DNA of 64,000 nt, from sequence record NC_041917.1; one strand, 5' to 3'. How positions within the stretch are numbered: position 1 is the first letter of the stretch; each line of letters opens with the position of its first letter. Below the pieces are notes generated by a model. That model did no database searches, had not been told where the DNA came from, and saw only the letters and a list, made by a program, of their open reading frames with translations. Positions 11,500 to 13,846 of this stretch are shown here, piece by piece. The translations under genes were made by a program, and so were the position numbers.

Positions 11500-12210
11500 A
11501 TGAATAATATAATGGAATATGTCAAATGTAGGGATGATATTTTCTATTTTATGGAAAAGTATTTAAATTTACAACTAAGAGGTTATCAAATTGACCAGTT
11601 AAACCAGTACTTAGAGGTACAAACTGGTCAAACATTGAATATATTAGGTCATCGAGAGTGTGGAATTACATTAATAAACTGTGTATTCCTATTGTGGAAG
11701 GGATTATTCGGCACAAATGAAAAAGCTGTTGTTATTTCCCCTAGTCAACTAATGTCCAATTATAATTCTAAAAAAATCATGGAATTGTATGCCATATTTT
11801 GTTCTAATTGGAATAATAATCAAACTAGATATGAAATGTCATATCATAATAGTACTACATTGATAAATTTCACAAATAGCTGCATAATAAAATTCCTTAA
11901 TTACACCAATATGCATCAAGTACGAGGAATATCATATAATTATATGTTTTTTGATGATGTATATTATTCTAAATTGGATATTGATGATATTAGTGTAGTT
12001 AAATCAAGTGCTAAGAAATATATCATAACTAATTCATGTTTACCCGAACATGTTCATCCATTAGAGGATACTGGCGTAATTATAAAGTATCCTTGGTACT
12101 GTGATTGTAAGCGAACTCAACAATGGCAATTATCGGAACTAAATAGTCTAGGAAAACCAGCATTTAACTTAATGTATGGTTGCACTAGAGGATTAGAAGA
12201 TGGTAAATGA
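11500..12210 (+). CDS. Degenerate large-terminase ATPase-domain paralog
   Basis: Co-linear with the gp17 N-domain: KCRDDIFYF vs [17 protein letters not shown] vs [21 protein letters not shown] vs [13 protein letters not shown]. No nuclease domain. Confidence 0.7.
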
Positions 12211-13846
12211 CAATATTGATTATGATGATTACGAATATGATGATGAAGATTATTCCGTAACGAAAAAACCCAAAACACAAATAGAATACACTGATGAAAT
12301 GATGGATGAACTGGCTAGATGCCAAACTGATCCATTATACTTTATTGAAAACTTTGTTTACATACAAAGTGAGGGTGGGGAGCGTTTATTTAAACCCTTC
12401 CCATATCAACGAGAGATGATTCAGAACTTCATCGATCACAAGAACAATATAATGCTTACTGCCCGTCAGATGGGGAAAACGACAGTAGTTGCTGCATATA
12501 TTTTATGGTATGCGATGTTTAATCCGACAAAAACAATTTTGTTGATGGGTAACGTACAAGCCGCCGCACAAGAAATCATGGAACGTATTAAGTTCGCATA
12601 TGAAATGTGTCCTGACCATATTCGTGATGGTGTTACTAAGTATAATGAATTAACTATTAAGTTCGAAAATAAGTCTCGTATTATTGCACGTGCAACAACT
12701 CCAAAAGCTGCTCGTGGTTTAACTGTAGACCTATTATACCTTGACGAATTTGCATTCGTACAAGAAAGTTATCAATCAAACTTTTGGGCTGCTGTATCAC
12801 CAACTTTAGCAGGTTCTGGTGGTAGTTGTATTATTTCCAGTACTCCAAATACAGAATATGATCAATTTGCATCAATTTGGTTTGAATCACAAATGCATAC
12901 TGATTCAGACGGTAATGAATATGAAGAAGATGGTCCAGGAATTAATGGATTCCGTGGAATTAAAGTTACATGGGATAAACACCCTAAACGTGATCAATCA
13001 TGGGCAAGTACTGAAGAATACAAATTAGGTTCTTCACGTTTTCGCCGTGAATATAACTGCGAATTCGTAACATATCAAGAAACATTAATTAATAGTGTTA
13101 AATTGACAGAAATAAAATCTAGAACTGTACGTGAACCAATTAAATTGACTGATGATGTTCGTTGGTTTAAAGAAATAGAGTATGGTTGTACATATGTCGT
13201 TGGTCTTGACCCTGCTGGTGGTACTGGTGGTGACGATGCTGCTATTCAGGTATATGAATTACCGACTTTAAGACAAGTTGCTGAATGGAAGCATAATTTA
13301 ACAATTATTCCAGACCAAGTTAAATTGATGCATAGACTTTTAAGTGAGATAGCTGCTAGAATGGAAGAAAAAGGTGCTCGAAATATTGAAGATCACTTAT
13401 TCTGGTCAGTTGAAAACAACACAATCGGTGAAGCGGCGGTATTAGCTATCCAACATTTGGGTATAGAACGTTTCCCTGGTACATTAATTAATGAACCAAA
13501 GAGAACTAGAACAGGCCGTGTGCGTAAGGGTATGACAACCACTAGAAGTACTAAAAAGACTGCATGTTTCCATATGCAGAAACTAATGGAAACCTTCAGA
13601 ATGGAAGTAGCAAGTACTGAATTGCATAGACAGCTTAACGACTTCATTAAATCTGGTATGGATGATGGTCTTTATAAAGCTAAACTTGGTTGTAAAGATG
13701 ACCTTGTTAGTGCTACATTATTAGTTGTTAGAATGATTGATATAGTAGCTAAATTTGAAGACAGAACGGCTCAAGTTATTAGTGAAACGCTAAATGATGG
13801 TGAAATATACCAGCCTCTAACGATACTAGTAAGTTTCAATCGTTAA
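12200..13846 (+). CDS. 17: Terminase large subunit (gp17-like)
   Basis: Walker A ARQMGKT, Walker B LYLDEFAF, coupling SSTPN, RNase-H-like nuclease GLDPAGG ... KDDLV. Confidence 0.95.

Follow-up and report, generated by a model that had tools for sequence, protein, structure and literature searches.

Viral packaging motors are described as homo-oligomers of the large terminase subunit (TerL) that are helped by an unrelated small terminase (TerS). Among the Rak2-like phages, a 'terminase-like protein (truncated form)' has already been described as a hallmark gene carrying an incomplete gp17 domain, with phiM12 and phiN3 named as other carriers (PMC5259590, PMC7760394), and for the phages XbC2 and XaC1 a tandem pair of large-terminase homologues is reported, without a small terminase (PMC11273794). 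We analysed one such gene, BF_0272, in a window of 64,000 nucleotides from sequence record NC_041917.1 (window coordinates are record coordinates minus 186000, and all features of the window given below lie on the + strand). Region 10900-14000 of the window is that of Serratia phage BF (KY630187, genus Eneladusvirus, 357 kb; 100% by megablast), which is a Rak2-like jumbo phage, and six Erwinia phages match the same region at 99.8-99.9%. BF_0272 (11500..12210, 236 aa, phrog_5989), already annotated as 'terminase DNA packaging enzyme large subunit', is followed by the true TerL, BF_0273 (12200..13846, 548 aa), which has an intact Walker A motif (GK93T), the D182-E183 pair and a nuclease domain. 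BF_0272 itself is a stand-alone, full-length copy of the TerL ATPase domain, consisting of the Rossmann core and the lid without the nuclease domain.

Compared with the ATPase domain of T4 gp17 (2O0H/2O0J, 3CPE), BF_0272 has the same fold over the whole domain, lid included, and the two have in common the KCRDDI.YF helix, the adenine-binding motif LR.YQ, the P-loop Arg and an RG pair ahead of Walker B. Unlike gp17, however, BF_0272 is a separate gene that lacks the Walker A Lys, the catalytic Glu, the nuclease domain and the ~100 N-terminal residues of gp17. CBB_274, GAP32_268 and pEa_SNUABM12_00271 are its orthologues and occupy the same position. Gp17.2 of Sinorhizobium phage phiM12 is also a stand-alone copy of the TerL ATPase domain directly 5' of gp17 (hhalign 99.9% to the family alignment), but it is 196 aa long, keeps GKT and DE, is without the lid and stands in the order gp15 - gp16 (TerS) - gp17.2 - gp17 - gp18. 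T4 gp16 resembles BF_0272 in its position just upstream of TerL, and regulation of TerL would be a possible analogy, but the two are unrelated in sequence and fold. The literature searched contains no mention of catalytic-residue loss in, or of a function for, the Rak2-like terminase copy. The two papers that describe it are silent on its evolutionary rate, its catalytic loss and its spread beyond the group except for phiM12/phiN3, and nothing on this gene appears in papers dealing with Avs5, with phage Tn-seq or with the comparative genomics of jumbo phages. The inactive state, the selection and rate, a truncation in the Yersinia fHe-Yen9 phages, the pattern of conservation and the repeated, non-monophyletic copies described below were not seen in the literature searched.

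The ATPase domain of BF_0272 and its motifs

A reading of the window made from the letters alone (the sequence-only reading) had proposed that the 236-aa open reading frame (ORF) aligns along the whole gp17-type ATPase domain, with the Walker A Lys and the catalytic Glu replaced and no nuclease domain following, and each of these observations was borne out. By BLASTP, residues 6-228 of BF_0272 align with residues 37-287 of TerL at 21% identity (E 3e-8), the lid strings included, and a profile of the orthologues aligns with a profile of 46 TerL sequences over 222 columns corresponding to TerL residues 27-285 (hhalign, 99.5%, E 2.9e-23). Searching PDB sequences with a profile of 13 BF_0272 orthologues returned the T4 gp17 ATPase domain (E 2e-15). 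The AlphaFold2 (AF2) model of BF_0272 is confident (predicted local distance difference test, pLDDT, 95.3; predicted template modelling score, pTM, 0.92), and its best PDB match by Foldseek is again the T4 gp17 ATPase, 2O0J/2O0H (TMq 0.82, root-mean-square deviation 3.0 A, E 1e-10), followed by the TerLs of P74-26, D6E, HK97 and Sf6. Its ESM Atlas model gives TM values of 0.86-0.87 to TerL clusters. Within the BF genome, phrog_5989 ('terminase large subunit') matches two proteins only, TerL and BF_0272, the latter at E 1.8e-78. A Pfam scan of BF_0272 at E<=1 gave zero matches, the Terminase_6N hidden Markov model included, and the Terminase_6N-type ASCE ATPase fold with lid is present by hhalign and Foldseek. 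The same Pfam scan gave no Terminase_6C or RNase H-like nuclease domain, the chain stopping after the lid at residue 236. On the strength of these alignments we take the resemblance between BF_0272 and TerL to be homology, with chance excluded.

The degenerate Walker A motif of BF_0272 (11647..11670) reads G50-H-R52-E-C-G55-I56-T57, keeping the P-loop Arg and Gly and replacing Lys by Ile, where H51-R-E-C-G-I56-T stands against A88-R-Q-M-G-K93-T in TerL. Its Walker B strand (11941..11958, Y148-M-F-F-D152) is followed by Asp153 at the position of the catalytic Glu, giving FFD152-D153 against LD182-E183. The YQ adenine-binding pair is kept as Y30-Q31. Among the 12 orthologues of the BF/Mimasvirus clade the Lys position is I, V, L or M without exception (12/12) and the catalytic Glu position is D, S, E or N, while R52 is the same in all of them and G55, G143 and D152 are nearly invariant; a remote E. 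coli homologue, the 13th row of the alignment, has Ser and Met at the Lys and Glu positions. In lambda terminase, changes of the catalytic Glu are all lethal (PMC6379665). With Ile at the Walker A Lys position and Asp for the catalytic Glu, BF_0272 is predicted to be unable to hydrolyse ATP canonically, and the alignment indicates that the catalytic loss is ancient and uniform among the BF/Mimasvirus orthologues. Sequence, profile and fold, together with a loss shared by all orthologues, lend good support to the term pseudo-ATPase that the sequence-only reading had given this paralogue.

Two arginines of BF_0272 are of note. The P-loop Arg acts in cis, and in P74-26 the proven trans finger is R139, located between alpha2 and beta3, a place at which an Arg is present in T4 too (PMC5727402). 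BF_0272 has R142-G143 (11923..11928) 11 residues ahead of the catalytic position and aligned with the VRG of T4 gp17; the TerL counterpart, R172-G173, likewise precedes the catalytic position by 11 residues, and R172 is invariant in 46/46 TerLs. R142 is thus a candidate counterpart of the P74-26 trans finger.

Selection, constraint and repeated occurrence

We used the Nei-Gojobori method to compare nonsynonymous and synonymous divergence (dN/dS) in five pairs of phages, taking as neighbours the genes for RNaseH, a 166-aa ORF (BF_0271), TerL and a structural protein. The paralogue gave a dN/dS of 0.16 for XbC2-Kaldavass, 0.24 for CBB-GAP32 and 0.32-0.40 for the deeper pairs, in which dS is saturated. 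The neighbouring genes gave 0.03-0.11 across all five pairs (BF_0271, 0.03-0.08), and with a dN ~4-15x that of its neighbours the paralogue is the fastest-evolving gene of the neighbourhood. When random substitutions were simulated at the observed divergence, the ORF stayed open in 0/5000 trials for each of BF-CBB, CBB-GAP32 and CBB-XbC2, and in 0.4% of trials for the closest pair, XbC2-Kaldavass. It is nevertheless intact in BF, the six Erwinia phages, CBB, GAP32, XbC2, Kaldavass and the full-length metagenome clusters. Since the ORF has remained open much longer than expected under neutrality and dN/dS does not reach 1, we conclude that the paralogue is a maintained gene under purifying selection, with weak constraint or episodic change.

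Constraint is distributed unevenly along the protein, as judged by mean pairwise identity among 11 full-length orthologues. The N-terminal helices (residues 4-21, 11509..11562) are the most conserved part of BF_0272, residues 1-25 having 74% identity, and the lid subdomain (residues 193-231, 12076..12192, IKYPWY..W..LNSLG..F..YGCTRG) comes second, its helices having 56%. The surroundings of the P-loop reach 48% and the central beta/alpha core 25%.

Such copies recur in T4-superfamily phages, which is the most interesting result. The corresponding slot of the E. coli phage vB_Ec-M-J (Asteriusvirus) is filled by a 228-aa 'hypothetical protein' of phrog_27915, a remote BF_0272 homologue only (hhalign 91.5%, E 8.5e-7); BLASTP finds no link between the BF copy and its E. 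coli/Klebsiella counterparts. By tblastn, relatives of the vB_Ec-M-J type occur in 47 records of E. coli, Klebsiella (including RaK2 and K64-1) and Salmonella phages and, among the annotated matches listed, adjoin TerL. An exhaustive phmmer search gave 71 cluster representatives, of which 56 were aligned, and some of the short ones may be contig fragments or pieces of split TerLs. Lys is absent from 43 of these 56 and is replaced by I (10), L (8), F (7), M (5), T (4), V (3) and others, a hydrophobic residue in 33/43. Glu is kept in 10/43 lysine-less against 13/13 lysine-bearing representatives (Fisher p = 6e-7), and in the remaining 33 of the 43 it is D, N or S. R52 and G143 are kept in 41/43 and 40/43 of the lysine-less set.

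Unrelated contigs and phages carry lysine-less copies directly upstream of TerL: L012, a 326-kb contig (gp23 - copy - TerL), L013 (copy - TerL - portal), L014 (copy immediately 5' of TerL), L008 (copy 5' of a split TerL) and Xanthomonas phage Xoo-sp13. The Xoo-sp13 copy, Xoosp13_242 (L015:2735-3430), precedes TerL, matches the family alignment at 99.9% by hhalign and is annotated 'terminase small subunit', a label that is probably mistaken or that rested on gene position alone. The order in L009 is gp15 - copy - 199-aa ORF (weak phrog_735 match) - TerL - sheath, and the short contigs L011, L019 and L020 carry lysine-less copies with no TerL neighbour or are uninformative. By BLASTP the copies of L009, L012, L013, L008 and Xoo-sp13 are each closest to their own TerL. 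The maximum-likelihood (ML) tree places those of L013 and L008 as sisters of their own TerLs (support 100/100 and 96/98) and forces at least four changes of state. Forcing all copies into one clade costs 77 log-likelihood units (approximately unbiased, AU, test, p = 0.0002), and a single origin of all lysine-less copies is rejected by this test. The tree is consistent either with recurrent duplication and convergent loss of the same residues or with gene conversion of old copies with TerL; the BF/Mimasvirus copies form a long branch of their own, so that their origin is old. As a tentative possibility for the class as a whole, T4-superfamily phages may repeatedly have duplicated the TerL ATPase domain and convergently killed its active site, giving a third, non-catalytic terminase subunit that would complete or gate TerL sites.

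Gene layout, TerL and the small-terminase question

Directly upstream of BF_0272 lies BF_0271 (10956..11456, 166 aa, phrog_15898, of unknown function). Between the two is a 9-bp hairpin followed by a U run (11464..11488; -11.7 kcal/mol, z -2.1 on strand folding), which is terminator-like or attenuating and was not called as a terminator by a consensus terminator scan. A Shine-Dalgarno-like AAGGAAG, read from the sequence (11489..11495), ends 4 nt 5' of the BF_0272 ATG, and BF_0272 is predicted probably to be translated. Its 3' end shares 11 nt with the start of TerL at 12200 and contains a GAGGA 5' of that start. Promoter-like matches at the locus show no excess over chance, and a search for RNA sequencing runs covering the region listed none. 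The order RNaseH - 166-aa ORF - paralogue - TerL - structural protein - SSB is common to CBB, GAP32, XbC2, Kaldavass and the Yersinia fHe-Yen9 phages. Because the overlap is not conserved, the paralogue and TerL genes being adjacent without overlap in XbC2 and Kaldavass, we abandoned the idea that a programmed frameshift joins the two into one protein.

The T4 gp16-type TerS models PF11053 and phrog_735 have no match anywhere in the BF genome. TerS proteins evolve fast and are easily missed, however, so failure to find one is weak evidence. BF_0272 has neither the sequence nor the fold of a TerS, its fold being that of an ASCE ATPase. By synteny with phiM12 (gp16-gp17.2-gp17), it is BF_0271 that occupies the expected position of the small terminase. 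Its AF2 model is beta-rich (pLDDT 82.5, pTM 0.53), with a confident, beta-rich C-terminal half (residues 81-166, pLDDT 89-95); Foldseek gave no match to it in the PDB, VIA matches were weak (best Z 4.9, over the N-terminal 60 residues only), and the ESM Atlas returned unnamed viral clusters only. BF_0271 is strongly conserved across Rak2-like phages, the Yersinia phage copy being 90% and that of the E. coli phage 54% identical to it, and is always immediately upstream of the terminase pair.

Some observations concern TerL itself. In vB_Ec-M-J (L002:3770-5411) TerL is annotated as two ORFs, 'A' of 113 aa and 'B' of 445 aa, and other E. coli Rak2-like phage records likewise carry two 'terminase large subunit' features. 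The frame shifts inside the Walker A codons, A reading LTARQM and then nonsense and B having ..GKTTVAAAF upstream of its annotated start; a 445-aa form is cluster P0118, with 20 member sequences. This could stem from a homopolymer sequencing error that recurs, from a TerL that is truly split or from a programmed frameshift. A different division occurs in the metagenomic, T4-like contig L008 (5781-8953), where TerL is divided between a 299-aa ORF for the ATPase and a 394-aa ORF for the nuclease, with a 370-aa DUF7487 gene between them and the lysine-less copy upstream of all three. Many close TerL relatives (P0077, P0091, P0094-P0104) are 870-896 aa long with LAGLIDADG (PF14528) or Hint (PF05204) domains. 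Residue 94 of BF TerL falls at profile position 435 of 890 in the phrog_36964 alignment, which suggests that the intein of these relatives is inserted just after the Walker A Lys; BF TerL has no intein.

A candidate partner of TerL and other explanations

The reading we favour, at a little under an even chance, is that BF_0272 is a non-catalytic partner of TerL, possibly also binding the portal via its lid, that gates assembly or activity. BF_0272 would be made together with TerL from the same late transcript, as the strong Shine-Dalgarno sequence and the 11-nt overlap suggest, and would bind TerL via the subunit interface that TerL uses in its own ring, perhaps contacting the portal through the lid. 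It would then control terminase assembly, or the ATPase or nuclease activity, either ahead of packaging or as packaging begins. A role of this sort would resemble that of dead, Arg-finger-keeping subunits in other ASCE/AAA+ machines. The delta-prime subunit of the E. coli clamp loader is a non-catalytic ASCE/AAA+ subunit that keeps its Arg finger. By analogy BF_0272 too may be a hydrolysis-dead paralogue with an Arg able to complete a neighbour's site. We infer a partner because Arg52 and Arg142-Gly143 are retained and because conservation is concentrated in the N-terminal helices and lid and not in the catalytic core. It is further supported by the homology and fold, the motif state across orthologues, the purifying selection, the tight linkage to TerL and the lysine-less copies beside TerL in unrelated phages; the high rate was likewise observed.

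Several results weigh against this partner role. On terminal tree branches the paralogue is 20-58x longer than the TerL N-domain, and a core motor partner would be expected to evolve nearer the TerL rate. R142 is kept in just 29/43 lysine-less and 8/13 lysine-bearing representatives, which makes the argument from the Arg finger weak. In the supplementary files of the Erwinia relatives the word 'terminase' matches in three gene tables only, and the virion mass spectrometry table seems to be without a terminase; such an absence is expected for a non-virion protein. In phages fHe-Yen9-03 and -04 of Yersinia a 1-nt gap ends the paralogue ORF at 185 aa, without the lid, and the lid region has additional deletions of 30 nt and 12 nt. 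The C-terminal remnant (LNSLE..GYTRGFSDEN) is kept there in another frame, just 5' of the TerL ribosome-binding site. Since this copy is frameshifted and its lid lost, at least part of the paralogue is dispensable in the fHe-Yen9 phages.

That truncation, with the retained ribosome-binding site, is also what would be expected of a decaying duplicate that does nothing itself and whose frame stays open solely because TerL's translation start signals and promoter region lie within it. The high dN and the divergence of the E. coli/Klebsiella relatives beyond BLASTP linkage agree with decay, but we think it quite improbable, given that ~230 codons are open in all other lineages against a neutral expectation of <1/5000, that dN/dS is below 1 throughout, that specific residues and two regions are strongly conserved, and that the model is confidently folded at pLDDT 95. 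The concern over frameshifts and neutral decay that accompanied the sequence-only reading applies in part: the gene is no pseudogene by dN/dS (0.16-0.40) or by its open frame, and one lineage does carry a frameshifted, truncated copy. Conserved residues could instead mean that BF_0272 is an active or nucleotide-binding NTPase with a non-canonical P-loop in which Arg52 replaces Lys, as the retention of that Arg, Gly55, Thr57, Asp152 and Y30-Q31, and of GKT and DE in phiM12 gp17.2, might suggest. This seems very improbable indeed when most lysine-less representatives have a hydrophobic residue for Lys and D, N or S for Glu (33/43 in each case) and the equivalent Glu changes in lambda terminase are without exception lethal.

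Two further explanations were considered. As a substitute for TerS, an ATPase-domain-derived subunit in the gp16 role would recruit TerL to DNA and stimulate its ATPase, which would suit the slot immediately upstream of TerL (and the order paralogue-TerL-portal in L013), the 'terminase small subunit' label in Xoo-sp13, the failure of PF11053 and phrog_735 to find a gp16-like TerS in BF, the lack of a TerS-like fold in BF_0271 and the tandem homologues of XbC2 and XaC1. Against it stands phiM12, in which a copy of this type coexists with a TerS, although that copy keeps its Lys, and probably also L009, where the lysine-less copy is beside the 199-aa ORF; the ASCE ATPase fold with no DNA-binding domain seen in the model, and a pI (isoelectric point) of ~6.9, also count against it, and we regard it as unlikely. 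Doubtful too is the anti-defence role that the sequence-only reading had raised, in which the TerL-shaped BF_0272 would act as a decoy or shield, occupying or misleading Avs1-3-type STAND sensors without activating them. Avs1-4 are reported to recognise TerL and portal folds (PMC13581612). The BF_0272 model can be superposed on PhiV-1 TerL as it stands in the Avs3 complex (chain 8dgc_E, TMq 0.73), and a very high amino-acid rate with the ORF kept, repeated origin and partial loss in one lineage are patterns common in arms-race genes. Recognition by Avs3, however, reportedly involves the nucleotide-bound ATPase site and the nuclease site of TerL, and BF_0272 would then be without both of the sites contacted. 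Moreover, dN/dS is below 1 in every pair, a TerL-mimicking binder could trigger a sensor as easily as block it, the conserved N-terminal helices and lid are no obvious sensor epitope, and such a role is unmentioned in the literature searched. Fast evolution and repeated origin fit both a motor regulator and an Avs decoy.

Genes of this kind are variously labelled 'terminase large subunit', 'terminase small subunit' and 'hypothetical protein', and mislabelled copies can corrupt TerL-based phylogenies and predictions of packaging strategy. If the reading of BF_0272 as a dead copy of the TerL ATPase domain with a role of its own is true, then the packaging machinery of some large phages includes a pseudo-enzyme subunit, or these phages deploy a TerL look-alike in their conflict with the host. 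If T4-superfamily phages have indeed repeatedly made a third terminase subunit in this way, it would be a heteromeric packaging initiator, and no tailed phage is yet known to have one.

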